From Macrostomum lignano (taxonomy: Eukaryota): a stretch of 64,000 nt of DNA. Under the pieces are notes generated by a model. The model had not been told where the DNA came from and made no database searches. It worked only from the letters and a program-made list of their open reading frames with translations. Every line of letters starts with the position of its first letter. Position 1 is the first letter of the stretch. Made by a program: the position numbers and the translations under genes. The stretch covers positions 13,804 to 77,803 of the forward strand of contig NIVC01002637.1 in assembly GCA_002269645.1 (NCBI GenBank), in the 5' to 3' direction. Below are positions 1,674 through 63,758 of this stretch, in pieces.

Positions 1674-1744
1674 CTGCAGGTTTGTTTGATGGGTAGCTGG
1701 TTGTATTGTGCATCGTTGTGTACATTCTACTTGCGAATTGTATA

Positions 1745-3935
1745 TCCCACACTGTATTTCACTCAGATCCCACACTGTATTACACTCAGATCCCACACTG
1801 TATTACACTCAGATCCCACACTGTATTTCACTCAGATCCCACACTGTATTATACTCAGATCCCACACTGTATTTCACTCAGATCCCACACTGTATTATAC
1901 TCAGATCCCACACTGTATTTCACTCAGATCCCACACTGTATTATACTCAGATCCCACACTGTATTTCACTCAGATCCCACACTGTATTATACTCAGATCC
2001 CACACTGTATTTCACTCAGATCCCACACTGTATTACACTCAGATCCCACACTATATTACACTCAGATCCCACACTGTATTACACTCAGATCCCACACTAT
2101 ATTACACTCAGATCCCACACTATATTACACTCAGATCCCACACTGTATTACACTCAGATCCCACACTGTATTTCACTCAGATCCCACACTGTATTACACT
2201 CAGATCCCACACTGTATTTCACTCAGATCCCACACTGTATTATACTCAGATCCCACACTATATTACACTCAGATCCCACACTGTATTTCACTCAGATCCC
2301 ACACTGTATTTCACTCAGATCCCACACTGTATTATACTCAGATCCCACACTGTATTTCACTCAGATCCCACACTGTATTTCACTCAGATCCCACACTGTA
2401 TTTCACTCAGATCCCACACTGTATTATACTCAGATCCCACACTGTATTATACTCAGATCCCACACTGTATTTCACTCAGATCCCACACTGTATTATACTC
2501 AGATCCCACACTGTATTTCACTCAGATCCCACACTGTATTATACTCAGATCCCACACTGTATTTCACTCAGATCCCACACTGTATTACACTCAGATCCCA
2601 CACTATATTACACTCAGATCCCACACTGTATTACACTCAGATCCCACACTATATTACACTCAGATCCCACACTATATTACACTCAGATCCCACACTGTAT
2701 TACACTCAGATCCCACACTGTATTACACTCAGATCCCACACTGTATTACACTCAGATCCCACACTGTATTTCACTCAGATCCCACACTGTATTACACTCA
2801 GATCCCACACTGTATTTCACTCAGATCCCACACTGTATTACACTCAGATCCCACACTATATTTCACTCAGATCCCACACTGTATTTCACTCAGATCCCAC
2901 ACTGTATTTCACTCAGATCCCACACTGTATTATACTCAGATCCCACACTGTATTTCACTCAGATCCCACACTGTATTTCACTCAGATCCCACACTGTATT
3001 TCACTCAGATCCCACACTGTATTATACTCAGATCCCACACTGTATTATACTCAGATCCCACACTGTATTTCACTCAGATCCCACACTGTATTCACTCAGA
3101 TCCCACTGTATTTCACTCAGATCCCACACTGTATTACACTCAGATCCCACACTGTATCACACTCAGATCCCACACTGTATTACACTCAGATCCCACACTG
3201 TATTACACTCAGATCCCACACTGTATTTCACTCAGATCCCACACTGTATTACACTCAGATCCCACACTGTATTTCACTCAGATCCCACACTGTATTACAC
3301 TCAGATCCCACACTATATTACACTCAGATCCCACACTGTATTACACTCAGATCCCACACTATATTACACTCAGATCCCACACTATATTACACTCAGATCC
3401 CACACTGTATTACACTCAGATCCCACACTGTATTACACTCAGATCCCACACTGTATTACACTCAGATCCCACACTGTATTTCACTCAGATCCCACACTGT
3501 ATTACACTCAGATCCCACACTGTATTTCACTCAGATCCCACACTGTATTACACTCAGATCCCACACTATATTTCACTCAGATCCCACACTATATTACACT
3601 CAGATCCCACACTATATTTCACTCAGATCCCACACTGTATTACACTCAGATCCCACACTATATTACACTCAGATCCCACACTGTATTACACTCAGATCCC
3701 ACACTATATTACACTCAGATCCCACACTATATTACACTCAGATCCCACACTGTATTACACTCAGATCCCACACTGTATTACACTCAGATCCCACACTATA
3801 TTACACTCAGATCCCACACTGTATTACACTCAGATCCCACACTATATTACACTCAGATCCCACACTATATTACACTCAGATCCCACACTGTATTACACTC
3901 AGATCCCACACTGCTTTAGACTCAGATCCCACACC
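1745..3935. repeat. 23-bp minisatellite, ~95 copies
   Basis: Unit ACTCAGATCCCACACTGTATTAC with few variant positions. It explains the three overlapping 23-aa-periodic ORFs. Confidence 0.98.
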
Positions 3936-16300: not shown

Positions 16301-19300
16301 GGATTTTTTTGAAGCCGAGACATTCAATGGGTTTATGAATTCTGCGGGAGTAGGGCGGGAAGCTTTTGCTGTACAAATTCACTTACATGTAGTCATTTGT
16401 ACCGATCTATAACCAACCCAAAAAACGATCTGGGTTATTCTAACCGACCCCCACTGCCGGAAGTCCCGCGCTGCAGGTTCCCGTCCCTCACTTCATTTGT
16501 GAGTGCCTCACCTTTACTCAGGACAGGCTCACCAGGGGAGTACGAGATCTGCTAGCAGGAAATCTGCTAGCCGAAGTTTGCTAGCCGAAATCTGCTAGCC
16601 GAAATCTGCTAGACGAAATCTGCTAGACGAAATCTGCTAGACGAAATCTGCTAGACGAAATCTGCTAGACGAAATCTGCTAGCCGAAGTTTGCTAGCCGA
16701 AATCTGCTAGACGAAATCTGCTAGACGAAATCTGCTAGACGAAATCTGCTAGACGAAATCTGCTAGACGAAATCTGCTAGACGAAATCTGCTAGACGAAA
16801 TCTGCTAGACGAAATCTGCTAGACGAAATCTGCTAGACGAAATCTGCTAGACGAAATCTGCTAGACGAAATTTGCTAGCCGGAATTCGCTTGCCGAAATC
16901 TGCTAGCCGAAATCTGCTAGCCTTTGATTTGTACGAGTAAATATATAACTTATACTGCCACTGCAAGCTATTTAGACTGAAAGTTGTTCGTAGATATGTT
17001 TAAATTTAACTACGTGAACTACCTGCTTTTAGCGCTAAAACATTATCAATGTCTAAAAAAGATTATCTACGAAAGCACAGTTTTCACTGTTACCACGAAT
17101 CACATATCACTGAATGCGTAAAAATATTACATAAAAATTTAATTTGCATATTGCATGTAATCATGCACAGCTAATTCAACTAGATAAACTTTGCTGGGAA
17201 CACAGCTGGAAAGTCAGCATCAAAAACAGCAATTACATGTGTATTCTTTACATGTATTTTATGCTTCTATAAAATATGAGGTAGGAAAAAATTTTTAAAT
17301 GATTTTGTCGATTTCCAAGTACTTTAGCATACAGTAACACACAGTTGGTGTACAGTATCTATAGCTAGATACATGTATGTCCAAAGTACAATTTACTATA
17401 GCTGTATGTATCGTAAATGTATACATGTAGATATTTTCCATCGATTACGGTACACTGTACATAGTAAAAACTCTAAAGTAAAGTAATTAGAGCAATTAAA
17501 CGCAAATTTATTTGTCCGGCATTAATACGTCCTGCAAAGTTTCTTGCGAAATCGGACAAGAAGAATTGTCTCTAGCAAATTGCAACTTCGTAAATTGCTG
17601 CTCGCCGGTTTTGGTTAGCAAAATTCCTGCTAGCAGATTTCGGCTAGCGGATTTCGGCTAGCAGATTTCGTCTAGCAGATTTCCTGCTAGCAAATTTCAT
17701 AGACCCGCTCACCAGCTCCAGTCACACACTGAGGACTATCACCAGCCCCAGTCACACACTGAGGACTATCACCAGCTCCAGTCACACACTGAGGACTATC
17801 ACCAGCCCCAGTCACACACTGAGGACTATCACCAGCTCCAGTCACACACTGAGGACAATCACCAGCTCCAGTCACACACTGAGGACAATCACCAGCTCCA
17901 GTCACACACTGAGGACAATCACCAGCTCCAGTCAAACACTGAGGACAATCACCAGCTCCAGTAACACACTGAGGACAATCACCAGCTCCAGTCACACACT
18001 GAGGACAATCACCAGCTCCAGTCACACACTGAGGACTATCACCAGCTCCAGTCACACACTGAGGACAATCACCAGCTCCAGTCAAACACTGAGGACAATC
18101 ACCAGCTCCAGTCAAACACTGAGGACAATCACCAGCTCCAGTCACACACTGAGGACTATCACCAACTCCAGTCACACACTGAGGACAATCACCAGCTCCA
18201 GTCACACACTGAGGACTATCACCAGCTCCAGTCACACACTGAGGACTATCGCCAGCAGCCCCCAATCACACACTGAGGACTATCGCCAGCCCCCAATCAC
18301 ACACTGAGGACAATCACCAGCTCCAGTCACACACTGAGGACAATCACCAGCTCTAGTCACACACTGAGGACAATCACCAGCTCCAGTCACACACTGAGGA
18401 CTATCACCAGCCCCAGTCACACATTGAGGACAATCACCAGCTCCAGTCACACACTGAGGACTATCACCAGCCCCATTCACACACTGAGGACTATCACCAG
18501 CTCCAGTCACACACTGAGGACTATCACCAGCTCCAGTCACACACTGAGGACTATCACCAGCTCCAGTCACACACTGAGGACTATCGCCAGCCCCCAAACA
18601 CACACTGAGGACTATCGCCAGCCCCATTCACACACTGAGGACTATCACCAGCTCCAGTCACACACTGAGGACAATCACCAGCTCCAGTCACACACTGAGG
18701 ACTATCACCAGCCCCAGTCACATATTGAGGACAATCACCAGCTCCAGTCACACACTGAGGACAATCACCAGCCCCATTCACACACTGAGGACTATCACCA
18801 GCTCCAGTCACACACTGAGGACTATCGCCAGCCCCCAAACACACACTGAGGACTATCGCCAGCCCCCAATCACACACTGAGGACTATCGCCAGCCCCCAA
18901 TCACACACTGAGGACTATCGCCAGCCCCCAATCACACACTGAGGACTATCACCAGCTCCAGTCACACACTGAGGACTATCACCAGCCCCAGTCACACACT
19001 GAGGACTATCACCAGCTCCAGTCACACACTGAGGACTATCGCCAGCAGCCCCCAATCACACACTGAGGACTATCGCCAGCCCCCAATCACACACTGAGGA
19101 CAATCACCAGCTCCAGTCACACACTGAGGACAATCACCAGCTCCAGTCACACACTGAGGACTATCGCCAGCCCCCAAACACACACTGAGGACTATCGCCA
19201 GCCCCCAAACACACACTGAGGACTATCACCAGCCCCCAATCACACACTGAGGACCATCACCAATCCCACCAAACACTCGTACGAGTGTACTATGGCCCAA

Positions 19301-26896: not shown

Positions 26897-29800
26897 ATGG
26901 AGGAGACAGCGCAGAAGCTTGACCGTGCCGACTATGAAGTGCGCTTTCAGTCCTCCAGACGCGATCTGGTGGCGGCGCTGCGGTATCGCGAGTCCCGGTT
27001 TGTCCGCCTCGCTGAGTATCTTGGCGAGCTCAGGCGACTGATGTGTGACTTGAAAATCGAATGCGAAGCGACCGATGAAGACACGAAGCTGGACGAGCTG
27101 GACGAGCTGGACGAGATCTTGCAGAGCCAGCTCACTCTGTCCTTGATCGTGTTCGGCCGCAGCAACACGGGCAAGTCGACACTGCTAAACCAGCTGCTGC
27201 GGGATTGGCAGGAATCTCCGGCAAGCAGCCGAATAACCGGTCTGTTTCCCACCGCTGAGCACACCTGCACCGCCAGACTCACCTGCACTAGCCACGGACC
27301 GAGCAGGACAGTGTCAATTCAGGACGTAATAACTAGTCAGGCGATCGTTGATACGACAGCCTTCGAGGATAGCAGGGAGTTACGAGAGTACATCGACCTT
27401 AAAGGGAACGAGCGGGAGGATCGAAACACTGCGATGCTGGTGAAGGTGTCGTTGCCCAATGAACTACTTCGATACAACCTTCAGCTGGTGGACAGTCCCG
27501 GCATGGGCGAGAATGCTCAAATGAATGAGACCGTTCGAAATTTTTTGAACGGGGCCAAGTCGGCCATAGTCGTGTACACTGTTAATGGCACGGAAGGATA
27601 CAAGCCAGAGCCTGTAAGTTTGTGATGCCTAGAAGGTACATTTTCGAATGCCTGTGTAAGAAAGTTAATCTCAGTTATAAAATGTGAAGTAGGCGGCTCC
27701 TATACGAGCGAATTGCATTCTAAATTGATTAATTGACAGTTGAAAGTTGCAGACTTTAGATAGGTTCTTTCTAGCATTATCAACAAGTGTATCAACATTT
27801 AAAAACTTGCAGGACACTGAGAACATCCGGTTCTTGATGGAGGAGCACAGCAGTATGCAAAAAGTGTTCGTTGCCAACCGGATTGATTGCTGCATAAAAA
27901 GTTACTACAAAAACTTGTGCGAGGAAGTTCAATGCGAGGACTCTAGCGACGAGGAGGAGGTAGTTAAAAGCCTGGAGAATGATATTGAAGGATTTCAGTA
28001 CTCGGCGCACTGCCAAGAGCACATGCTGAAGCGCATGGGAAGCGTCATGGAGTCATTCAGCCAGTACCATCCAGGTTGCATCACCCCCGGCAGCGAAACC
28101 GCTCTGCTCGGCGTGTCGGCCAAGTCAGTGGAGAATTTTTTATCGAACAATTGGCCCGTGCCGCACCCGCCATACCTGGACTCATTCCTGGAACTAGAGG
28201 CTCGAATTGCTGCGCTGGTTTACGCCAACGCTCGGCAGAAGCTTACAGATGCGATGGCCATTATGAAGCGTCTATTGATGCTGGCCTCCGTTCACCTGCT
28301 AGCCTTCAAGTTGTCCTCCGTTGTGACCTCCAGCCTTACCGAGATGCCAATGGAGCTGATGTCCCGGGCGCTCCGCGTAATTAAAGACACCTACGAAAGA
28401 ATCAGCAAGGCTCTGCTGTTAGTGGCAGCGGAGGACTCGCTGCTGGACCTGAGCGACCCCGAGAGTGAGCTGAACGTCCTAAAGAACCAATTTGCTCGCG
28501 ACGGTGCCAAAATGCAGGCCGCCGCTGACGTAAGCCTTGTGATGCGCCAAGCTGAGGCCAAGCTCATTGCTAGTCTGACTCAAGGCAAAAACAGAGAATT
28601 TCAAGCAGCCGTCAGACTGCTATGCAGCTTCAAGGATATCTTAGTTAGCCACCTGAAAGCTGAGCTTCGATCCAAATATAAAGAGGTCCTTGCTAGGTCA
28701 GTATTGTCGCACACAGCTCACAGTGTCATGGAAGGCTTGTGCAGCTCCGCGGAAGAGTTTCATAATGATCTGGCAATAATAAAATGCACCTTTGAGCCAA
28801 ATGATACCGAGTTCGGTGACCTTTGTGCAAGCCATCTAGTCGATGGCATGCGCCAGGCCCTGCCCAGACTTGTCCGCACAGCTGAGTTCGCCCAGCTAGT
28901 GGCCTCCAAATCTCCGGACAAGCGAACCCGACAGCTCGACTACTTCCTGGCCGGCATTGACCTTCGAAAGCTGACTGGCGAAGCCATCGAACTCTACTGC
29001 GCCCAGCTGTGCCAGAAGAAGACGGACATCGAGGATCGGCTGACCGTTCAGCTCGACGAGTTGCGGCAGAGAAGTTTCGACAGTGTCGAAAAGAAACTGC
29101 GCCTGAAGCCGCTGAAGCGGGATCTGACAGTTCTGCTCTTCAAGCTCACTGGGATGGATACGGAGCTGCGCTGGAATGCTTCCAATGTCACTCGCGAATG
29201 TGAGTATGGCCAACCCTGGTGGGAGATCTTAGAAGTCTGAAATTTAGCTCAAATACACGTATATTTCTATTATATGTAGAACGGTTGCTGAGAAATGGAA
29301 ACTCATCACTCAAAACTCGATCATAAAAATAAGGTCTAATAAATGCAAGTATGATAGCCTCGGTTTAGTGTGCTGTCAATAGCTCGTAATAATAATAATT
29401 GATTACACCTGCCCCAATTGAGCCAGATGTGCAACCGACAGCTCAGCCGCATCATCTGAAGGCTGCGTACGGCTGTTCAGTGCATGGACTGGGGGGGGAG
29501 GGGGTCGCCACACACCCTCAATTACCCCAGCTAATGCTGGCACCCATTTTACAGCTGGGTGAACTGAAGCAATGCAGAGTTAAGTGTCTTGCTCAAGGAC
29601 ACAAATTGTTCCAGTCGACCTTCAAGTCGTGAGTCCGACTAGGCTATAACCCTTACGAATCTGTCAAGGATCTGGTCAAAGGTTTGGCGATGATTTCCAT
29701 GTACATGTAGATTAGGATTTAGGGTCAGGTCTAGTAGACAATTTGTTGGAGTTAAATTACGGCAGTATGTTGACGTGAACTCATCTATGTTGTTAAGTCG

Positions 29801-38598: not shown

Positions 38599-39642
38599 TC
38601 AGGCAAGGCTGCCGCGGCGACCTGCTGCTGACTCCGACGCCACAGAACATCCAGATCGGAGCCGCTGACTGCCACCAACTGGTGCGGCGACCGGCTGAGC
38701 CGGCGGCTGCCGCTGAGTTCGCCGCCGACAACAGTTGCCGATTCGGTGTGATGCCGGCGGCGCGGCTGCGGCTGCTGCTTTGGACCGGCGACTCTGAGGA
38801 GGGTTGGGCAGCGCGGAGAGGGACGCTAATGATTTTTGGGTCTCTCGAGAGAAGAGAAAGAGGAGGGGAGAGGAGAGGAGAGGAGAGGAGAGGAGAGGAG
38901 AGGAGAGGAGAGGAGAGGAGAGAAGAGGAGAGGAGAGGAGAGGAGAGAAGAGGAGAGGAGGGGAGAGAAGAAGAGAGGAGGGGAGAGGAGGAGGGGAGAG
39001 GAGAGAAGAGGAGAGGAGAAAAGAGGAGAGGAGAGGAGAGGAGAGGAGAGGAGAGGAGAGGAGAGGAGAGGAGAGGAGAGGAGAGGAGAGGAGAGGAGAG
39101 GAGAGGAGGGGAGAGAAGAGGAGAGGAGGGGAGAGGAGGAGGGGAGAGGAGAGAAGAGGAGAGGAGAAAAGAGGAGAGGAGAGGAGAGGAGAGGAGAGGA
39201 GAGGAGAGGAGAGAAGAGGAGAGGAGAGGGGAGGAGAGGAGAGAAGAGGAGAGGAGAGGAGAGGGCAGGAAAGGAGAGGAGAGGAGGAGAGGAGAGGAGA
39301 TCTAACTAGTCAATCAATTCATGTCCGAGCATAACACCAACGATCGACTCCATAGCCGATTGAATGAGTTGAGGCATGACTCAAAACTCATGGAGCCGAA
39401 AATAAAAAAGAATGGGACAGTGGACAGACAGAATCCAGAGCATATCTTTACCTTACAGGTTGTTGTTGTTGCTGTTGTTTTTGCTGCTGCTGCTTCTGTT
39501 TTTGCTGTTGCTGCTGCTGTAGCAGTTGATGAGGCATCGGAGGCTGGCAGTGTCGATGCTGCATCGGCTGCTGCGGAGGCTTCAGGCAACTGTGACGGAG
39601 CGAACTCGACTGTAGAAATTGATCACTGCGCAGCTGCTGTCT

Positions 39643-41930: not shown

Positions 41931-42910
41931 GGCGCTGTTTGCTTCGAGTAGTTAGTTTACACCAATCGCTTACACTAATAATCTCGCTCTCACAAATGCA
42001 TGATAAATAGACACATTTCATCATTCCCAGCCTTTGCCAATGGCACGTTCGCTCGTAGTCCTCTAATGAGAACGGGCAACCTGAATGCCTCAGTAGCTAT
42101 GCAGTTAACACGAGTCCCACCCTTGCGTCACAGCCTCAGGCCACCCTAATTTGGTGTTGGGGCTTGTCGCGCGGTTAACAACCCATGGCACAGACGGGGT
42201 ACATGATGTGTCTGTGCGTGCTGAGGGGTCAGCAAATCTGGGTCCCCACTCGAAGGCTCTTCAGGCTGGTGATCAAGGACAAATACGAGTATATTATCCA
42301 CTATACTAAAAATAAAAAATCTTCTTAAAGGAATACTTGCTTGTTTGCTGATAATTTGGCGAGAAAAAAGAAACTAGGAGAAATCTCGTGGAGATGTCTG
42401 CACTGTAAATAAAAAGTAGCCGAAAAAGTAGCCTGAAGGGTGCCGGTTGTAAGTAGCCGGATAGGTGCCGAAAGTGTCCAATTTTCGGCGCCTTTTTCAA
42501 TATTAGGGTGCCGCAAGCGGCTAATTCTAGGCTTTAAAAAGTGCCGCATGCAGCCACTTTTAGGTTAAAAAAGTAACCGCTTGTGACACTTTTTTGTAGA
42601 AAAGGGCGCCGAAAATTAGACACTTTCGGCACCTATCCGACTAATTACAACCGGCACCCTTTAGGCCACTTTTTGATGATTAAAATATGGCCCTTCCAAG
42701 AACTTACTCCTTCAATATCCTGAGCGTTTCAACTAACCAGCTTTCTTTCGGTCATTTGATGTATGTAGTTGGTTAGTTAGTTAATAATAGTGAAAAAAAA
42801 TCATTCAGTGGCAAATCTTGAGTGCATAATTTTTAAGGTTTGAAAAAAATAATGTAATTTTGAAGTTAAGCATATATTTAAAATTAGACACTGTTTTCAG
42901 CAAATTGGGT

Positions 42911-43975
42911 TAGCTAGTAGCATGAAAAATTGCACAGAGAGCATGTTTAGCACCTTAAAAGAGTCAAGCAATGAAAATAAGAAATAGTACTTTAATTTTA
43001 GTCAGTGAACAACAAGGTTTAGCTAGTAGCATGAAAAATTGCACAGAGAGCATGTTTAGCACCTTAAAAGAGTCAAGCAATGAAAATAAGAAATAGTACT
43101 TTAATTTTAGTCAGTGAACAACAAGGCTTAGCTAGTAGCATGAAAAATTGCACAGAGAGCATGTTTAGCACCTTAAAAGAGTCAAGCAATGAAAATAAGA
43201 AATAGTACTTTAATTTTAGTCAGTGAACAACAAGGTTTAGCTAGTAGCATGAAAAATTGCACAGAGAGCATGTTTAGCACCTTAAAAGAGTCAAGCAATG
43301 AAAATAAGAAATAGTACTTTAATTTTAGTCAGTGAACAACAAGGTTTAGCTAGTAGCATGAAAATTGCACAGAGAGCATGTTTAGCACCTTAAAAGAGTC
43401 AAGCAATGAAAATAAGAAATAGTACTTTAATTTTAGTCAGTGAACAACAAGGTTTAGCTAGTAGCATGAAAAATTGCACAGAGAGCATGTTTAGCACCTT
43501 AAAAGAGTCAAGCAATGAAAATAAGAAATAGTACTTTAATTTTAGTCAGTGAACAACAAGGTTTAGCTAGTAGCATGAAAAATTGCACAGAGAGCATGTT
43601 TAGCACCTTAAAAGAGTCAAGCAATGAAAATAAGAAATAGTACTTTAATTTTAGTCAGTGAACAACAAGGTTTAGCTAGTAGCATGAAAAATTGCACAGA
43701 GAGCATGTTTAGCACCTTAAAAGAGTCAAGCAATGAAAATAAGAAATAGTACTTTAATTTTAGTCAGTGAACAACAAGGTTTAGCTAGTAGCATGAAAAA
43801 TTGCACAGAGAGCATGTTTAGCACCTTAAAAGAGTCAAGCAATGAAAATAAGAAATAGTACTTTAATTTTAGTCAGTGAACAACAAGGTTTAGCTAGTAG
43901 CATGAAAAATTGCACAGAGAGCATGTTTAGCACCTTAAAAGAGTCAAGCAATGAAAATAAGAAATAGTACTTTTG
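42911..43975. repeat. 109-bp near-perfect tandem array (~10 copies) inside the EnSpm element
   Basis: Unit starts at 42911, 43020, 43129 and so on. Confidence 0.97.
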
Positions 43976-46061: not shown

Positions 46062-48686
46062 TTAGAAGGGCAAAAAGGAAGATAAAATAGCATAGTGTTT
46101 ACCTGCAATTATGTCTACAAATACTGGTGGATGGAGAAATTTGTGTACTGGATCAATAATATTAACTTGTGATGTTGGTTTACAATAAAAAGTAAAGTAT
46201 GATGGCAAAAAAATGGAATTGTAATTTTTTGTTACCAAAAGCCACTTGCCCTTAATGCATATAATTTTAAAAAGTGATGATAGGGTTAGATCATAGCAAT
46301 CATCAAAGTCTTGATGTTTACTTTGAAAAATAATCATTGACTTGTACTTAGTTGGAGCTTTAAACTCTAATGACCCTATTTTTAAACTACTTGCTACAAT
46401 ACAATCCTTAGGCATATCATTTATACTAGGCAACTGCAAATAACTAGCAATGGTTTCGATTGTTTGAAAATCAAAAAGATTAACAAGTGATACTTGCTGT
46501 AAATTTGAAGCCAATGGAACATCAAATTCAACAGTAGACATTGTAATAGCTTGATGCAGTTGAAACCTTTGTGCTGCTGTTGCACATACATTTTTAAAGC
46601 AACGTACTATAGGTATTATTTTTTTAAAGTACTGATGGATTGACTCAAATCTCATTGTCCATGCTACTTTCAATCCATTATACATAGGGATTAGGTCTGG
46701 ATAATGCAACATATAATGGAGTTTACATTTTTTTGATAATTGATTGTTTGATACTTTGTATATTAGGTTATTATGTTCATTTATTAAGGTAGCAATATAG
46801 TCTGAATTGTGTTCTTCTTCATCTAAAGTTGATAATAAAATGGCCAGAACTTCACAATGTATTAATAGAAGATTCATGATATCATACTTAATTGGATTAT
46901 TACTGGAAAGAACATAAGGCCCAAAATATAGAGGCATTCGATGGATAATGTGAATCATATCTGCTGCACAGAATGGCAATCTATTATTGTTGATGTGTGC
47001 TGGCAAAAGAGAAGGCATTGAGACAGGGAAAAGTTTGAAAAGCCTTTTGATATTATCAAAATTTAGGATTTTGTGCCTTAATAAGAATTTAATAGCAAGA
47101 CAAGCAACGAAGTGTGATGTACCTTCTAGTAAATCATGAAAAAAATCTGGGGGGAAAAAGTAAGGCATGGTAACATATCCAAGACCATTGAATGGACAGT
47201 TTTGCTTAATTCCAGTTTGAATGCTAATGTCCCAGCTATCATCTCTACTTAAGTCATCATGCTTAGTTAGACAAAAATCAATGTCAGTAGCCTTTGCAAT
47301 ACAAAATCTACATGCTTGGCCTGATACAAAATTTGTCCCAAGTCCAACAAGTGAATTAATTGATAGGTTGTCACCAGTACATAAACATGCAATAACTGGA
47401 ACATTTATTTTTTCCCCATTTAAAGCTTCAAATGTAATTCCATAGTCATACAGATTATTCAATTCTTCAATCAAAGGAGAATATAGCTCTTCAAGGTTGA
47501 GGATATTATCTTGAATAATTTTATATTTTACTAAGCAAGCTAAAAAGAAACACTTTTCTTGAGATGCAATTTCCTTTGGCAGATTTAAAATTCGATAGTA
47601 AATTGCATAAATTTTATGCTTACACCTAGCTTTACCAATTGGGTTTGCCACTTCAAATTCATCTGTATATAGTGCAAGATAAATAGCATCTTTAGGGTCA
47701 TTTTCAATTAATGGTTTGATATAATTTTCAAAGTATGGACTAGAAAAGAAAGGTGATTTTTCCTTTAATTCCCCAGTAAAAATCATAGATTGAAAATATT
47801 TATTTTGTAAAACTGAAGAAATATTGCTTTTGATTGGAATATAAACAATACTATTCCTATTAAATAATGGTACTTCAATAGGTTCAACAAATTGATAATG
47901 CCCTTTAATAAAACTTAACAACTGTGAATCACTTTCTAATATTTCAAGGCAAGTATCAAAGAATGATTCTAATTGCAAGAAATCTTGGACCCCTTGGATG
48001 GTTTTATTTGGAATACCTTTTTCTTTCAGGAATTGACAAATGGTTGATAGATATAATATACTAAAGGAAGAAAAAATGCCTTTTACTTGTAAACTTAATG
48101 ACCTTGCTGTACTATTTGGTAAGCTGAAATAATCTCTAGCTTGAAAATAAAACTTTGCCATGTTGCAACCACTGTTTGATTTTAACTTTTCTTTCAATTC
48201 CCATGCAGATGATTCTGGCCTGGCTAGTGCTAACATAGAAACAGGAGGCCTAACTAGGTTTGATAAATCTCTAGACCCTTCTTGGTTTTTAAATTCAGCA
48301 TGTACAAGCTGGTTTTGCTCAATGTCAGTAGGCATATTTATTGTAGAAGATCCAGTCAGTAAGTGTTCATTCATATGCATATCATTGGCACTGGCTTGAT
48401 TGCTAGGACTTATGTCTGTAACATCAAATTGAAATGGCTCAGTTAAGCTTTGACTTAGGATAGTATCACTGTGGAACCTAGAAATATGCTTGATAGTGGC
48501 TTCTTTCGAGGATGAAAATACAAAACAATTCTGTAATGGACACTGAAACTTCAGTTGAATTTCAGCTGACCTAGTGGACAAGAGAGGACAATAATGGCGA
48601 TAATGCTTTAAAAACTGGGATAAAGAAGTGCTCTTACAACCACATTTACATGTGAACATGGACAAGGAGTTATGACTTGCCATCAT
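46062..48686 (-). CDS. EnSpm/CACTA-type DDE transposase, 874 aa
   Basis: N-terminal Cys/His zinc fingers. LYTDEFEVANPIG..HK, GDNL....G....CRFC, DFFHDLLEG, KLHYMLHYP and WTMRFES are typical of animal EnSpm transposases. Confidence 0.9.
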   Translation of the reverse strand: MMASHNSLSMFTCKCGCKSTSLSQFLKHYRHYCPLLSTRSAEIQLKFQCPLQNCFVFSSSKEATIKHISRFHSDTILSQSLTEPFQFDVTDISPSNQASANDMHMNEHLLTGSSTINMPTDIEQNQLVHAEFKNQEGSRDLSNLVRPPVSMLALARPESSAWELKEKLKSNSGCNMAKFYFQARDYFSLPNSTARSLSLQVKGIFSSFSILYLSTICQFLKEKGIPNKTIQGVQDFLQLESFFDTCLEILESDSQLLSFIKGHYQFVEPIEVPLFNRNSIVYIPIKSNISSVLQNKYFQSMIFTGELKEKSPFFSSPYFENYIKPLIENDPKDAIYLALYTDEFEVANPIGKARCKHKIYAIYYRILNLPKEIASQEKCFFLACLVKYKIIQDNILNLEELYSPLIEELNNLYDYGITFEALNGEKINVPVIACLCTGDNLSINSLVGLGTNFVSGQACRFCIAKATDIDFCLTKHDDLSRDDSWDISIQTGIKQNCPFNGLGYVTMPYFFPPDFFHDLLEGTSHFVACLAIKFLLRHKILNFDNIKRLFKLFPVSMPSLLPAHINNNRLPFCAADMIHIIHRMPLYFGPYVLSSNNPIKYDIMNLLLIHCEVLAILLSTLDEEEHNSDYIATLINEHNNLIYKVSNNQLSKKCKLHYMLHYPDLIPMYNGLKVAWTMRFESIHQYFKKIIPIVRCFKNVCATAAQRFQLHQAITMSTVEFDVPLASNLQQVSLVNLFDFQTIETIASYLQLPSINDMPKDCIVASSLKIGSLEFKAPTKYKSMIIFQSKHQDFDDCYDLTLSSLFKIICIKGKWLLVTKNYNSIFLPSYFTFYCKPTSQVNIIDPVHKFLHPPVFVDIIAGKHYAILSSFLPF

Positions 48687-57088: not shown

Positions 57089-58141
57089 TCCTCCTAATAT
57101 ATTTCCTAGCTTTTGACAAAGTACATAGCAACAAACTGCATCAAGTATGTTTTTTTCTAATTTACAGGGTTATTAATTGCATCTATGCTTATCCGACATA
57201 TTTATGTTAATGCTATACAACAACAACAACAAAATACGCTGTCAGGATGGCAAAAGCCAGCGCCACAGGGCGCGCTTCATGGCTTGGGCGCGAACAAAGG
57301 CCGCGCAACGGCAGTGTCCGGGGCGCCGGCGTCAGCCAGCAGACAGTCGACGTAACGCCGAGTAGGTAGGGTGCCTCGCCGGTAGGGTGCCTGCAGCGTG
57401 AGCAGCAGCACCTCCTGCACCGGCTGTGGGCAGTACGACTCGGCGCGGATGAGATGGCCTGCGAGCTGGAGTCGCCGACGGCGCAGTAGATCGCTTGGAC
57501 GTGGCAGGCCAGCGCGGCGATAGACTGCCGCGTTGTTGACTCGCTCGACACCGATGTTGAAGGCGACGCGCAGCAGGCCAGCGTGCGCCGCATCGACCTG
57601 CTGTTTGAGTGAGTCCGTCAGCGTCCAGGTCTCGGCGTTGTACAGCAGGACGGTCTCGATCACCGCCTGGAACAGCGCCGCCCTCTGGCGGTCCGGTAGG
57701 GCCTCGGACTGCAGGACTGCCCTCACAGAACGAAAGGCAGCCCAGGCAAGCCCGCGGTGGCGTCGCAGGTCCTCGCGAGCGTCTGGAACCAGACCGCCGA
57801 GGTAGACGAACTGCTGACATCGCGGCAGCTCGGTCGCCTGCCCGTCAGCGCCTCGGCAGAATATTGCAGCCTCGATGTCGTCCGGCACGCAGAGCACAAC
57901 GGTCTTCTGCGTGTTGACCACCAGGCCGACGCTCGCCGCAACGGCAACTAGCCTGTCCAGCTGCCGTTGGGCGCCCTCGACGGTCGAAGACAGCAGGGCG
58001 AGGTCGTCGGCGTAGCCAAGCACGCTGAGCCGCTTCTCCGGTTGACGTCGACCCACGCGTCGCCGCAGCAGAAAGCCGTCGTCGTCGGTAGGTAGAGCAG
58101 TCCGCAGCACCCAGTCGAGCACCAGGACGAACAGAAATGGC

Positions 58142-58241
58142 GGTCGGGAGGTTCCGCCTCCCGGAGCGCGCTCGCGCGCTTCCCATGGCTGCCGCCTTCA
58201 CGCGGCGGGACCGTCCGGGTTCGCCCGGCCAAGTGCAGCCA
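58142..58241 (+). ncRNA. HDV-like self-cleaving ribozyme candidate at the LINE 5' end
   Basis: P2 TGGCTGCC/G-T-GCAGCCA, P3 GCC/GGC, L3 TTCACGC with the conserved U..G positions, P4 CCGGG-TTCG-CCCGG, J4/2 GCCAA with catalytic C58229. P1 3' strand GGGACC pairs with GGT...CCC. Folded by eye. Confidence 0.75.
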
Positions 58242-58364
58242 CCACCCCGGACCCGTGCGAGGGTCTTCGAGCGCCCCGGGTTTTTCCACACTGAGCCAGG
58301 CCTCCCAGCTCACCTGGCTCAGCTGCTTCTCAGAGCTGGAGACGTCGAGTCCAACCCTGGGCCG
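58185..58364 (+). other. Leader peptide ending in a 2A/StopGo ribosomal-skipping motif (LLLRAGDVESNPG|P)
   Basis: ATG at 58185. DVESNPGP is encoded at 58341-58364 and matches the D(V/I)ExNPGP consensus. Confidence 0.9.
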
Positions 58365-61300
58365 GCCTTCCCGTGCTGAGGCTGTGCCGACGAGGTAGCA
58401 AGGGGCTACTCCACCTGCTGCTCCGACTGCGGCCTGTGGTGGCACCGCCGCTGTTCCCGCCTCACTATTGCGGCTATCAACCGGCTCCACCGGGACAAGG
58501 CACCGTGGCACTGTCCCACCTGCGCCCACCAGCCTGCCGCTTCTGCGCCGCAGCCCGCTGCGACTCCGGCCCCCTCCGCGGCTGCAGGCCCCACTGGCAC
58601 CCACCAGACGCCAACGGCTACGACTCCACCTCCCCCGAACCCCGCACCGGCACCCCCGCCCTCCCCTGATGGCGCAACCAGCGCGGGCGGGGGCGCCGAA
58701 CAACAGCGGGGCGGCTTTCCGCATCGTCCAGCTCAACGCGGCAGGGCTCCGCTCCCGCAAGCTGGAACTGCTCCACTTCCTGGAGAAGCAGGGCGCCAAC
58801 GTCGCCTGCATCCAGGAGACGAACCTGTCCGGCAACACAGCGGCCCCACGCCTCAAAGGGTGGCAGATCGCTGGCCGGAAGGACCGCAACATCGGCCGCG
58901 ACGGGGAGGCAGCCAGAACCCACCACGGGGGCGTCTGCTTCCTTGTCAAGGAGGGCATTCAATTCGCCGACCTTCCACTAGGCGAGCTCGTCACCCACGC
59001 CACGTCCGCCGAAGCCTCGGGCCTCCGTATCCACGACCCCCGGCTACCACGCCCCCTGGATGTGATCAACATCTACCTCCCGCCAGTCCGCGCCGCAGAC
59101 GGCCGCACGGACGCCTTCGAGCCCGACTGGATCCCCGTTTCACGGGACTCGTTGGTGCTGGGCGACTTCAACGCCCACCACGGGATGTGGGACGCCTCGG
59201 CGGACGACGACGAGCTGGGCAGGGCCCTCGAAGACTGGGCGACGACCTACGACCTGGTCGCTCTGAACGACGGCTCCCCAACTAGGATCAGCCCCCGCGG
59301 CCTGCCGAGCTCCCCTGACGTCTCCTTCGCCCACGCCTCCTGGCAAGACCGGATCGAGTGGCGAACCGAGGAGCACATCGGCTCAGACCACCTGCCGATC
59401 ATCATCGACATCGCAGCCTCCGGCCCGGCCCGCTCCAGCTCCAAGCGCCTGACGCGGTACGCCTACCACAAGGCGGACTGGGACCTGTTCCAGCGGACCC
59501 TCGACCAGGCCCTGGCCAGCTGGCCGGAGCGCCCCCCACGCACGGTGCCCGTCGCCGCCAACCGGTTCGCGTCCGCCGTCACCAGCGCCGCCAAGGCGGC
59601 CATCCCGAGAGGCTGCCGGCGCGCCCCGATCGCCTGGTGGTGCCCGGAAGCCGAGGCGGCCTGCACCGCTCGCCGCGCTGCGCTCGAAGCGCTTCGCGCG
59701 AGCCCGGACGACCCGGCGCTCTCGGCCGCGTACCAGGCTGCTGCCGCCGCGGCTGCTCACGCCATCTGCCGCGCCAAGGAGTCGCTGTGGCGTGATTTCA
59801 TCACTGACCCGGGTCACGACCTGTGTTCCGCCGACCTCTGGCGGATCATCCGGGCCCTCGACGGACGGTCCCAGGGCACCCCCTCGTCGGCTGCCATCCA
59901 GGGCTCCACGGGGGCATCGGCCGTCTCCGACAAACAGAAGGCCGCGCTTTTCTGCCGGGAGTACGCCGCCGTCAGCAGGCTCCCCAAGAACAAGGCGGAA
60001 GACCGGCCGGTCATCCAAGAAGCCCGTCACACGCTCCGCGCCCCCTGCAGCTGCCAAGGCCTCCGCAGCGGCCCCTGCTCCGACTTCCAGCCCGACGCCC
60101 TCCGCCGCGCCTTGGTGCGCCTGCCGGACCGCTCGGCCCCGGGACCGGACGGGGTCGCGAACATCATGCTGAAGCATCTGTCCGACCTGGGGCTCCGCTG
60201 CCTCCTGGACCTCCTGAACCTCTCGTGGAGGACGGGGGAGGTGCCCGCCCCGTGGCGCCTTGCGGAGATCCGCCCGATCCCCAAATCGGACAAGCCAGCC
60301 GGCCTGACATCCAGCTTCCACCCTATCAGCCTCCTCAGCTGCCTGGGCAAGCTCGCCGAGAAGATGGTGAACGAGCGGCTGTCCTACATCCTCGAGGCAA
60401 ATGACGCTCTCCACCCGTCGCAAGCCGGTTTCCGTCAGGGCCGCTCCACGGAGGAGCACATCGCCGCGGCGGCCCAGTACATTTTTGACGGTTTCCAGGC
60501 CAAGAAGCCGGCAGCCCGCACCGCTCTGCTCCTTGCAGACTTCTCCAGAGCCTACGACCGCGTCTGGAGAGCCGCCCTCATCGTCAAGCTCGGTCGGAAG
60601 GGGATCCCCACGTGCCTCATCCGCTGGCTCAAGGGATTTCTCTCCGACAGGAGGGCCTTCGTGCGGTGGGTTAGTGCGGCCTGCAAGCCAACCGTGTTCT
60701 CCGAGGGGCTGCCGCAGGGGTCGGTCCTCGCCCCGATCCTGTGGGTGATCTACATGGACGACCTCCTGGACGGCGCCCCACGAACTGCCTCACGCTGGCG
60801 TACGCCGACGACAGCACCTTCGGCGCGCAAGGGACCACCCCTCGGGAGTGTGAGCGGGCCCTGCAACCGGCGGCCGACTGGCTCGTGCGCTGGTCCCAAA
60901 CCTGGAAGGTGGACCTGAGCCGCACCAAGTCGGTCGTCGCTTTCTTCTCGCTCGACCCCCGGGAGGTCAACGGAAAGGTCCAGCCACGCATCCTCCTCGG
61001 CGACTCGCCAGCTCCGTTCGAGCTGCATCCGAGGCTCCTGGCAGTGCACCTCGACTCCCAGCTGACCTTCCGCCACCACGCCGAGCTCCGGCGCCGCGCC
61101 CTCCAGCAGCGCACCGGCGTCCTACGCTGCCTCGCGGGCCGCGACTGGGGCCAGGACGGCCAGCGCCTCGCCCAGCTCTACCGCACCTACGCGGAGGCGG
61201 CCGCGCTCCACGGTGCCTCCATGTGGCTCACCTTCGCGTCCGACTCCTGCCGGGACGAAGTCGAGATTGCGCATCGATCGGCCGCCCGCGTCATCACTGG

Positions 61301-63758
61301 CTGCTGCCGCTCGACCGCCATTGGCGCCCTCATGGCTGAGGCCGACCTCGTGCCCCTGGCGACCAGAGCGGAGGCGGCAGGCGCAGCCCTGTTCGAGCGA
61401 GCCCTCCGTCACCGACAACCGACTCCGCTCCGCGCTGCAGCAGGCAAGACCTCTACGCCCCGCTTGCGCGCTCACGGGGAGCCTGGGGCCTTCCGCAGGA
61501 ACTGGCGCGACTCGGCGCAGCACCTGAGCGCCGCCGCCGGCCTGGCCACCCTCCCCCGGGAGCAGGAGAACCTCCCTCCGCTGCCATGGTCCGTCCGACA
61601 CCAGCCGGGTCACCATCCGCTGCGACCTCCTGACCGCGACCTCCCGAGAGGAGGCGCCCCACGTCAGAAAGCTGGCCGCGCTGGAGACGCTGGCGAGCCT
61701 CCCGCCCGCCGACCTGGAGCTCTGGACAGACGGTTCAGCCTCCGGGGGCACCCTTAACGGCGGAGCGGGGGCGGTCATCTTCAGCAAGACCGCGCCGCCA
61801 GTCCACCTGTCGCAGGCTGCGGGCCGTTACTCTTCCTCCTTCCGTGCCGAGGAATCGGCTCTCCGGCTGGGGCTTCAGCACGTCGCCTCTAGGCCGGACC
61901 TTGCCTCCCTGAGCGGCCTCCGCTGCCTGACGGACTCGCAGTCCCTGCTCCGAGCCCTCGAGAAGGGACCGTCCAAGTCCTCCTCGCCAGCGTGCCGGGA
62001 GATCTTGACGCTGCTGACCCACGTCGCCGCCCGCTTCCCAATCTGGCTGCAATGGGTCCCCAGCCACTGCGACCTCCGGCGGAACGATGCTGCGGACGTC
62101 ACCGCCAAGACCGCGCCGGCCTCCCCCAGAACGAGACGCCGATCGACTTCGGGTCAGCGCGGGCCGCCCTCCGCCGGGTCCTCGCCGAGCGCACCCGCGA
62201 AGCCAACGCGGCCGACCCGCACTGCGCCACCAACCGTCTGGCAACCGCCATCGCCGCCCCGCGGCCACGCCTTAACCGGGCCGACGCGGTGACCCTCGCC
62301 CAGCTGCGCACGGGCCACTCACCGCTCCTGCGCTGGTATCGGCACCGGATCGGCCTGGACACCGCCGCCACCTGCCCCCGCTGCGGGCCGCCGACGAAGA
62401 CGTGGCCCACGTCCTCCTGCACTGCCGGGCCCTTGACGACCTTCGGGCCCGCACCCTAGGGCCAAACCCGTCCCTGGCCGTCCTCTCGACGGACGGCCTC
62501 CGCGCGCTCGATTTCCTCCGCACGGTAGGGGCGCAGACACGCCCCCCGGATCCAACCGGCCGGGAGTAACAACAACAACAACAGGAATGGCGCCAGCGTA
62601 TCTCCCTGAAGCACTCCGGAGGATGTCTCAAAGGAGTCCAATAGGCCGTCCGGTGTTGTCACAGCAGCTGTCGTATCACGGTACATCGCCATGATGGCGG
62701 AGATCAGCTGCTCAGGCACGTTGTACGCGCGGAGCACCATTGGAAGCACGGCTCTGACAACCGAGTCGAATGCCTTCTTGAAATCGATAAAGATTAGAAT
62801 CAGGATCGACTGGCGAATCCGCGCCTCCTCGATGACTCGGCGAAGAGCCAGGATCTGCGCCACTGTGCCGCGATGGGGCCGGAACCCGTTCTGCTCTGGG
62901 CGCAGGTACGGATCCAGCACTGGCTGCAACCGCGAAAGCAGCATCCGGTTGAACAGCTTCGCTGCACAGGACTGAAGGCAGATGCCTCGATGGTCTTCAA
63001 GCATAGTGGTGCCCGGCTTCTTTGGAACAGCGACGATGTGCGCCGTGGTCCATTCGTTGGGCGCCGCCTCACCGAAGAGCACGCGGTTCATCACTCTGGC
63101 GACCTCAGCGGCCACACAGGGGATGCGCAGCGCCTCGATGGGCACCTCGTCCGGACCCAGCGCTTTCCCGCCCGGTGACTGCTGGCGAGCTTGACAACGT
63201 CGGCTGCGTTGACTGGGGCTACGCTGAAACTCTCCTCTGCCGGCAACGGCGTCTCCGGCGGCAGTGTCAGACTGTCTGGCAGCGGGGGTGGCGGCGCGTT
63301 GACGATGGCGGCGAAGAACTCGCGCAGCTCGTTCCTGCGCTCATCCGGAGTGTCACCAGCCAGGTTCAGCGGATTGCGCCGCTTTCGCGCCGTCAGAGCT
63401 TTGATGGCGGACCAGGCCACGCGCCCTCTGGCATCGGGCCCAGCGGCAGAGACAGCCTAAATGGCGTCATCGACAGCCGCTTGTTGGCGCTGCAGGTAGA
63501 CAGCCACCAGAGCTGCCTCTGCCTCGCGGGTTGGTCACCTGCTCAAGCGGAGCCTCTCCAGATCTTCCCTCGCTGCCTGAATCGCGGGGTCGTCCTACCA
63601 GACCGGCTGCCCACGTTGAGCCGGTTGCATCATCGGTTAATGCTATATTACATGTTGATGTTATAACTTAGCTTGCATTGCTATCATTTCAGAGCAAGAG
63701 AGCTACAAAGTGTGGGGTACTACTAAGTCAGCAAGCCCAAGTTGCAGATAAGTTAGAC

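Follow-up and report, generated by a model that had tools for sequence, protein, structure and literature searches.

The window analyzed here is a stretch of 64,000 nucleotides of the Macrostomum lignano contig NIVC01002637.1 (assembly GCA_002269645.1, positions 13,804 to 77,803, forward strand). It contains a retrotransposon that lacks long terminal repeats (non-LTR), and the subject of this report is the 5′ region of that element (58142-58241; GGUCGGGAGGUUCCGCCUCCCGGAGCGCGCUCGCGCGCUUCCCAUGGCUGCCGCCUUCACGCGGCGGGACCGUCCGGGUUCGCCCGGCCAAGUGCAGCCA), a candidate self-cleaving ribozyme of the hepatitis delta virus (HDV) type in which the first helix, P1, appears to be divided between two separated segments. 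The element has a GC content of 70% compared with about 45% for the window, and its parts follow in the order ribozyme, 2A peptide, PHD-like finger, apurinic/apyrimidinic endonuclease (APE), reverse transcriptase (RT), RNase H and (CAA)n tail. It is flanked by a target-site duplication (TSD), the left copy, AACAGAAATGGC, matching the right copy, AACAGGAATGGC, and when the flanks are joined the reading frame of a host RT gene is restored (..APFLFVLVLDW..). This host gene belongs to an unrelated second non-LTR element, lies on the minus strand, is split by the insertion into 57277-58141 and 62592-63145, and continues with its 5′ part beyond the end of the window. The GC-rich element is a nested insertion in the RT gene of this other element. 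Because a G is the next base after the TSD on both sides, the element starts at 58142 or at 58143. A first-pass annotation of this DNA had placed a GGT exactly at the TSD-defined start, and the verified duplication bears this out.

The window copy of the element is dead. It carries at least five frameshifts and one in-frame stop (58377-79), and its alignment to an intact relative falls into six segments, in frames 2, 3, 2, 3, 2 and 1. The domain set of the L1Tc/ingi type is nevertheless present, comprising the Pfam APE, RT and RNase H domains, an N-terminal 2A peptide (GDVESNPGP) and the 5′ ribozyme. By the order of these parts we call the element L1Tc-like, a likeness of architecture and not a phylogenetic placement of its RT. 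The coordinates of all features are collected in Table 1.

Table 1. Features of the retrotransposon and of its 5′ region, in window coordinates.
Feature	Position	Strand	Basis or remark
Non-LTR retrotransposon, GC-rich (70%), degraded copy	58142-62584 (3′ end approximate)	+	TSDs, Pfam domains
TSD, left copy, AACAGAAATGGC	58130-58141	+	Within host RT gene (minus strand)
P1a GGU, pairing with ACC 58210-12; predicted cut 5′ of G58142	58142-58144	+	Direct reading, folding models
Insert hairpin 1, 7-8 bp, -13.4 kcal/mol	58145-58163	+	Folding
Insert hairpin 2, 7 bp, -10 kcal/mol; 3′ strand holds GCTT of the putative ancestral P1	58164-58181	+	Folding
GCTTCC, rival contiguous P1 strand, same as the P1 5′ strand of the L001 family	58178-58183	+	Alignment
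P1b CCC, pairing with GGG 58207-09	58182-58184	+	Direct reading, folding models
J1/2, single A, also first base of first in-frame AUG (58185-87)	58185-58185	+	Direct reading
P2 5′ strand, UGGCUGCC	58186-58193	+	Direct reading, descriptor, relatives
P3, GCC 58194-96 / GGC 58204-06, around L3 UUCACGC 58197-203	58194-58206	+	Direct reading, descriptor, relatives
P1 3′ strand GGGACC 58207-12 and P1.1 G58213	58207-58213	+	Direct reading, relatives
P4 hairpin CCGGG-UUCG-CCCGG, UUCG loop	58215-58228	+	Direct reading, folding
J4/2 CCAA	58229-58232	+	Alignment with relatives
P2 3′ strand, GUGCAGCCA, U58234 bulged	58233-58241	+	L001 family bulged at same position
Conserved CGGGUUUUU (U-run), then hairpin GAGCCAGG 58293-300 / CCUGGCUC 58313-320	58277-58320	+	Stem covaries among relatives
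2A-like peptide RAGDVESNPGP	58332-58364	+	In frame with ORF
PHD-like Cys/His finger	58365-58535	+	16.8 bits, under Pfam cutoff; L001 counterpart 31 bits, over cutoff
APE endonuclease and reverse transcriptase, over two frames	58693-61589	+	Pfam Exo_endo_phos_2, RVT_1
RNase H domain	61609-62109	+	PF00075, 35 bits
3′ tail TAA(CAA)n	62567-62584	+	Read from sequence
TSD, right copy, AACAGGAATGGC	62580-62591	+	First 5 nt overlap (CAA)n tail register

The helices follow in the order P1-(J1/2)-P2-P3-L3-P3′-P1′-P1.1-P4-J4/2-P2′, which agrees with the nested double pseudoknot of the HDV fold. The traits typical of that fold, a 3-bp P3, a 7-nt L3 that holds the C of P1.1 together with the reverse-wobble U...G, and a G directly after P1′ (the 3′ strand of P1), are all present. 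P2 is formed by the pairs T58186-A58241, G58187-C58240, G58188-C58239, C58189-G58238, T58190-A58237, G58191-C58236, C58192-G58235 and C58193-G58233, and P1.1 consists of the single pair C58199-G58213. The first-pass annotation had listed these core pairings, and all of them were recovered where it had placed them; it had not mentioned the bulge of T58234 in P2. A descriptor of the core (a 7-bp P2, a 3-bp P3, an L3 of 7 nt with the form NYCNNGN, a 6-nt P1′, G, a P4 hairpin, and CNAA before P2′) was run over both strands of the window (128 kb) and gave one match, at 58194; by chance, 0.05 matches are expected per shuffle of the whole window and 0.01 when the GC-rich element is shuffled. The plain minimum free energy (MFE) of the 100 nt is unexceptional (z = -1.43) in a folding model without pseudoknots.

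To place this core in a comparative frame, we collected relatives of the element. The nearest protein among 5.8 billion has 53% identity and the next ones 33%, and an exhaustive protein search, in which about 2900 relatives scored E<1e-30, gave proteins by the thousand with 30-43% identity and nothing higher than 51%; because of this ceiling, other copies of the window family are absent from the public protein sets. A search with the 2A-PHD region led to five more loci, and one further look-up led to the locus L018. The core was found upstream of 2A in three metagenome lineages, namely the L001 family (L001, L013, L015 and L016, from four samples), L002 and L018. P1 is GCUUCC/GGAAGC in L001, GCUUCC/GGAAGU in L013, GCUUCC/GGGAGC in L016, (A)UGUCC/GGACA(G) in L002 and GGUUCC/GGAACC in L018, and variation of this helix inside the L001 family is limited to U-A/U.G and G-C/G.U. 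P2 is GUGCGGCC/G-GCCGC-AC in L001 and in L016, the same in L013 apart from one pair altered by a G-C to A-U double change, UUGGGACGCA/UGCGUCCCGA in L002, and GACUCC/GGAGUC in L018. The sequence of P2 is thus wholly different among the window, L001, L002 and L018, yet it is paired in each. P3 also covaries from G-C to A-U, being GCC/GGC in the window and ACC/GGU in L001 and L002. L3 follows the pattern UUCNCGN in the window, L001, L002, L015 and L016, and reads UUCACGUU in L013 and UGCACGU in L018. The place of C58229 in the alignment is that of the catalytic C in the CNAA motif, which is CAAA in the L001 family and L018 and CGAA in L002. These covariations are good comparative evidence that the clade has an HDV-like ribozyme; the evidence covers the core, together with the contiguous P1 seen in relatives, and not the split P1 of the window. 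The suggestion of the first-pass annotation, that a non-LTR element here bears an HDV-like ribozyme at its 5′ end, is upheld by the rarity of the descriptor match and by the covarying core in three related lineages. Overall, sequence comparison makes a genuine HDV-like core at the element's 5′ end well supported, and from it we infer cleavage.

The four members of the L001 family are independent insertions with unrelated upstream flanks, and in their alignment homology begins at the exact G of GCUUCC; L016 is inserted in the endonuclease ORF (open reading frame) of another element. Because homology starts at the first P1 base, the 5′ end of these insertions coincides with the predicted cleavage site, and cleavage appears to define the 5′ end in this family. 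The TSDs of L001 and L002 were not found, their contigs containing single copies. An exact search with a 22-mer of the core gave a single match among metagenome contigs, at 528-549 of L005, and none among genome contigs. We rejected the L005 match as a chance occurrence: it lies in a bacterial-looking GC-rich contig, has unrelated flanks and overlaps a GGCGGGAC/GUCCCGCC palindrome. A protein-profile search of genome contigs returned distant relatives only (L006-L009, 24-30% identity) and the same search of viral contigs returned nothing. In the contigs of P0003, P0004, P0006 and P0007 the 5′ end is absent or the architecture different.

The 3′ strand of P1 in the window, GGGACC, equals that of L016 (GGGAGC) with a G-to-C change at 58211. 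No contiguous P1 of 6-7 bp, as is typical of the HDV fold, starts at the predicted cut site in the window. A full set of Watson-Crick pairs (6/6), beginning at the TSD-defined first base of the element (G58142/58143), is obtained only when GGU and CCC are combined across the intervening sequence. P1a can also adopt a register in which GGUC 58142-45 pairs with GACC 58209-12; the split registers k=2, 3 and 4 are all feasible, and the junction can therefore branch-migrate by one step. The 37 nt between the two half-strands consist of two abutting hairpins with zero unpaired junction bases, as the first-pass annotation had read directly from the sequence and as folding confirms. Two contiguous pairings compete for GGGACC. 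GCTTCC 58178-83 forms five of six pairs with it (G-C, CxC, U-A, U.G, C-G, C-G), with a mismatch of C58179 and C58211 and a U.G at 58181; it lies 36 nt inside the TSD-defined start and 2 nt before P2 and is partly buried in hairpin 2. GGUUCC 58150-55 forms all six, one of them U.G, but breaks hairpin 1. The base C58211, which is mismatched in the contiguous GCTTCC model, pairs with G58143 in the split model.

We compared these arrangements by model energies, which cover nested helices only. The split models gave -39.8 to -43.0 kcal/mol, a model without any P1 -36.3 kcal/mol, a 9-bp alternative helix (58150-58/58204-12) -33.6 kcal/mol, the contiguous GGUUCC -30.5 kcal/mol, and the contiguous GCUUCC -25.6 to -28.4 kcal/mol, so that the split models beat every contiguous model by at least 9 kcal/mol. 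The unconstrained MFE structure already has GGUC-GACC enclosing both hairpins. The MFE of the insert, -25.1 kcal/mol, was matched by none of 8564 same-length windows of the remaining element (mean -10.6, standard deviation 3.6), and flush folding was seen in 2.3% of same-length element windows. Any flush split P1 at a fixed start occurred in 29 of 108312 segments of the same composition (2.7e-4). The chance figures for the insert and for the split P1 are post hoc, but they argue against the split P1 being a coincidence.

The explanation that we favor, with a probability of about 0.45, is that 58142-58241 is an HDV-like self-cleaving ribozyme of an L1Tc-like element that has, in this lineage, a split P1. 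The RNA, often within a longer host transcript, would fold into the nested double pseudoknot of P1, P2, P3, P1.1 and P4 and would cut itself 5′ of the first P1 nucleotide, G58142, with C58229 in J4/2 acting as general acid/base; the cut would create the exact 5′ end that is later reverse-transcribed. Both hairpins would form first, during transcription, aligning GGU(C) beside CC(C), after which P1′ would pair across both half-strands to give a four-way junction without unpaired bases, where P1a and P1b may stack into a single helix along the uninterrupted 3′ strand. Put another way, P1 would have 4 bp and a structured J1/2 domain would come after it, the final bases of which would close the top of P1. 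As for its origin, an ancestor with a contiguous P1, GCTTCC/GGGAGC, would have gained a 5′ extension, and the G-to-C change at 58211 would then have shifted both the pairing and the cut site 36 nt upstream. The fuller proposition, that this is a natural active HDV-like ribozyme whose P1 is built from two separated segments across a perfect four-way junction and whose cut was moved 36 nt upstream by a 5′ extension, we hold slightly more tentatively.

Several observations weigh against this explanation. The split P1 of the first-pass annotation is the best fit for this copy, by its 6/6 pairing, its first base, its energy and its chance figures, but the copy is a single one and degraded by its frameshifts and stop, and the relatives are all contiguous. 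Because of this degradation, about one substitution in a 100-nt ribozyme is plausible, and C58211 is possibly post-insertion decay. No close family member was found, the best relatives reaching 51-53% amino acid identity, so that covariation speaks for neither the hairpins nor the split P1. In all relatives P1 is a contiguous 6-bp helix, stands 0-3 nt before P2 and lacks an insert of the window type, and a split-P1 solution sought in L002 and the L001 family was not found, apart from one weak spurious match in L015. The GC-rich sequence offers competing pairings, namely GG 58163-64 with hairpin 2 and UCCC, GGUUCC 58150-55, and the 9-bp helix. The fold may be unable to accommodate a junction that lies 3 bp from the scissile phosphate, and the papers searched describe no HDV-like ribozyme with an interrupted P1. 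Rfam gave no HDV-family match in the window at the gathering threshold, nor at E<=10 over 58142-58241 and its surroundings (57900-58500). It equally gave no ribozyme-family match at E<=10 for the contiguous-P1 relatives L001 and L002, and no match at the gathering threshold for L003, L006, L007 and L010-L017; because such clear relatives are missed too, the Rfam miss carries no weight for the clade. The first-pass annotation had held that the split would be contradicted by further copies in which P1 is contiguous and the hairpins are not conserved. Such loci were found in other families (at most 53% amino acid identity), and not among copies of the same family. This comparison shows an insert that, from the loci at hand, is lineage-specific, and a contiguous P1 in other families is no proof of non-function. 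A split P1 is plausible from the single sequence that displays it.

An unlikely alternative is that initiation of transcription sets the 5′ end. The 36-nt extension with its two hairpins would be a new internal promoter or a 5′ stabilizing module, the core would cleave weakly or not at all, and the GGU/ACC pairing would be incidental. The HDV-like fold would then be retained for another role, such as cap-independent translation or protection of the 5′ end. In L1Tc the first 77 nt are both promoter and ribozyme, with transcription starting at +1 (PMC5814959), and the extension in the window is unusually stable, palindromic and GC-rich. The P1 that is homologous to that of the relatives is mismatched, and a C-C mismatch in P1 has been tied to inactivity in other HDV-like ribozymes (PMC3774820). 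Moreover, the open 2A frame through the ribozyme in the window, L001 and L002 (see below) means that the region may have functions other than cleavage. However, initiation of transcription would leave the 6/6 split pairing from the first base and the flush junction to coincidence (2.7e-4), the catalytic core (L3, P1.1, CNAA, P2 and P3) is intact across 47% protein divergence, and the 5′ ends in the L001 family coincide with the start of P1.

Less probable again is an active contiguous P1 at GCTTCC 58178-83, in which case C58211 would be decay or a defect of the progenitor and the 36 nt upstream a transduced flank or uncleaved read-through. L001, L013 and L016 have exactly this strand in their P1, it stands 2 nt before P2, the P1′ of L016 is a single substitution away from that of the window, the copy is degraded, and P1 is contiguous in all known HDV-like ribozymes, including these relatives (PMC3774820, PMC4908430). 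Hairpin 2 would have to melt, however, and the model is 11-17 kcal/mol worse than the split models. Two perfect flush hairpins together with a terminal complement to P1′ are improbable for a random flank of 45% GC, and the extension matches nothing else: comparison of the insert and 5′ extension with the rest of the window and with the retrieved loci gave chance matches of 9-14 nt only. Nor would the extension be inheritable if the cut fell at 58178, yet its 36 nt stand in a TSD-flanked retrotransposed copy. The upstream GGUUCC 58150-55 would as a contiguous P1 imply a 30-nt structured J1/2 with hairpin 2, a cut 5′ of G58150, and first 8 nt that are extra bases of the 5′ junction. We consider this very improbable. 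The pairing exists (6 bp, one U.G), L018 has GGUUCC/GGAACC as its P1, and long structured J1/2 segments are well documented (PMC3774820, PMC4908430), but hairpin 1 (-13.4 kcal/mol) is lost in this model, its energy is 9-12 kcal/mol less favorable than that of the split models, and its cut falls 8 nt inside the TSD-defined start; by our estimate such a hexamer arises by chance in 36 nt of this composition in about 7% of cases.

Between the ribozyme and 2A, the U-run and its hairpin are conserved in position. Their counterparts lie at 263-310 in L001, 214-256 in L002, 255-300 in L003 and about 5585-5640 in L018, and the U-run reads GUGUUUUU in L013, L015 and L016. In the hairpin stem, eight of the nine pairs show double changes (4 sequences). 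The encoded peptide, GF(F/L)...PAHL..LLLRAGDVExNPGP, is kept in many distant relatives, and constraints on RNA and on protein may both act on this region. The slippery-looking sequence GGGUUUUU with the hairpin (58278-58320) was considered as a -1 frameshift signal and rejected as a general explanation. GGGUUUU is replaced by GUGUUUU in L013, L015 and L016; the closest AUG upstream shares the 2A frame in L001 and L002 but is in the +1 frame in L003; and GF(F/L) is also conserved as protein in many relatives. In L003 the 5′ region including the U-run and hairpin is tandemly triplicated in units of about 110 nt (1-300), and a long proline/serine-rich tandem repeat stands between its PHD finger and endonuclease (600-1800).

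The 2A frame is open across the whole ribozyme in the window (58142-58364), L001 (114-359) and L002 (127-310), and in these three L3 is always read with the codon UUC in that frame. In that frame the first AUG is found within the ribozyme or shortly behind it (window 58185, L002 185, L001 243), which suggests that translation begins inside the ribozyme fold or directly downstream of it.

HDV-like ribozymes have mostly been detected with structure descriptors in which a contiguous P1 is required. Should the split P1 prove functional, such searches would miss a class of ribozymes and under-count them, the HDV fold would accommodate a junction at 3 bp from the scissile phosphate, and a well-studied catalytic fold would gain a new topology of its peripheral domain. 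It would also offer a concrete case of a retrotransposon that lengthens its 5′ end and still has termini defined by a ribozyme. A non-functional split P1 would leave the element as a decayed, ordinary representative of a class already known. Whether or not the split holds, the element belongs to a widespread clade ordered HDV-like ribozyme, U-run and hairpin, 2A, PHD, APE, RT and RNase H.

Elsewhere in the window, more than 20 different mini- and microsatellite arrays occupy 762-54303, for example a 23-bp unit repeated 95 times (1744-3934), a 30-bp unit repeated 51 times (17709-19262), a 109-bp unit repeated 10 times (42910-43973) and (GAGAG)n (38847-39300). An intact ORF of 874 aa with a Transposase_21 (tnp2, CACTA-like) domain lies on the minus strand at 46062-48686, and no homologue of it was found at E<=1e-20 among 8000 word-sharing candidates from a collection of 5.8 billion proteins. 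On the same strand, 34663-34732 matches the Rfam tRNA model marginally (31.9 bits, cutoff 29) and was not called by ARAGORN; it may be a tRNA-derived repeat or pseudogene. Two adjacent plus-strand ORFs, 26897-27625 with a dynamin-type GTPase domain and 27747-29240 (497 aa) without a Pfam match, may form one large GTPase gene or pseudogene.

Among known systems, the CPEB3 ribozyme resembles that of the window in several respects: L3 is very similar (UUCACGU, against UUCACGC in the window), P1.1 is one pair, a G-U step precedes P4, J1/2 is short, and J4/2 has the form C-N-A-A. It is mammalian and intronic, has a contiguous 7-bp P1 and stands in no retrotransposon context. The L1Tc element of Trypanosoma cruzi (ingi clade) carries in its first bases the HDV-like ribozyme L1TcRz/Pr77, which cleaves at +1 (PMC5814959, PMC3185411). 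Downstream of it come an in-frame 2A and a single ORF with AP endonuclease, RT, RNase H and a C-terminal Cys motif, a plan that the window element shares (PMC5814959, PMC3185411). Unlike L1Tc, the window element has a PHD-like finger after 2A, (CAA)n instead of a poly(A) tail, a conserved U-run and hairpin before 2A, and a P1 that is apparently interrupted.

The ribozymes of R2 elements have the same fold and the same role in 5′ processing, with a P1 of 6-7 bp and a cut set by where the P1 strand pairs with P1′. Unlike the window element, R2 is site-specific, often takes its P1 from 28S rRNA, and has a variable J1/2 (up to 700 nt) and P4. In R2 ribozymes the cut site has been shifted upstream through mutation of an internal P1 together with a compensatory change of P1′, and mismatches at the top of P1 are tolerated; that paper describes no insert within P1 (PMC3774820). 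A structured J1/2 (P1.2) that pinches P1 and P2 speeds HDV-like ribozymes by up to about 1000-fold (PMC4908430). The stable helix between P1 and P2 of drz-Agam-2 is topologically similar in place to hairpins 1 and 2 of the window (PMC4908430). However, the domain of drz-Agam-2 follows a complete P1, whereas that of the window would follow bp 3-4, the strand returning for the last 2-3 bp of P1. The window also differs in having two hairpins, no single-stranded linkers and a P2 of 8 bp instead of 12. The split P1, if it works, would possibly be an unusual variant within this known class of ribozymes.

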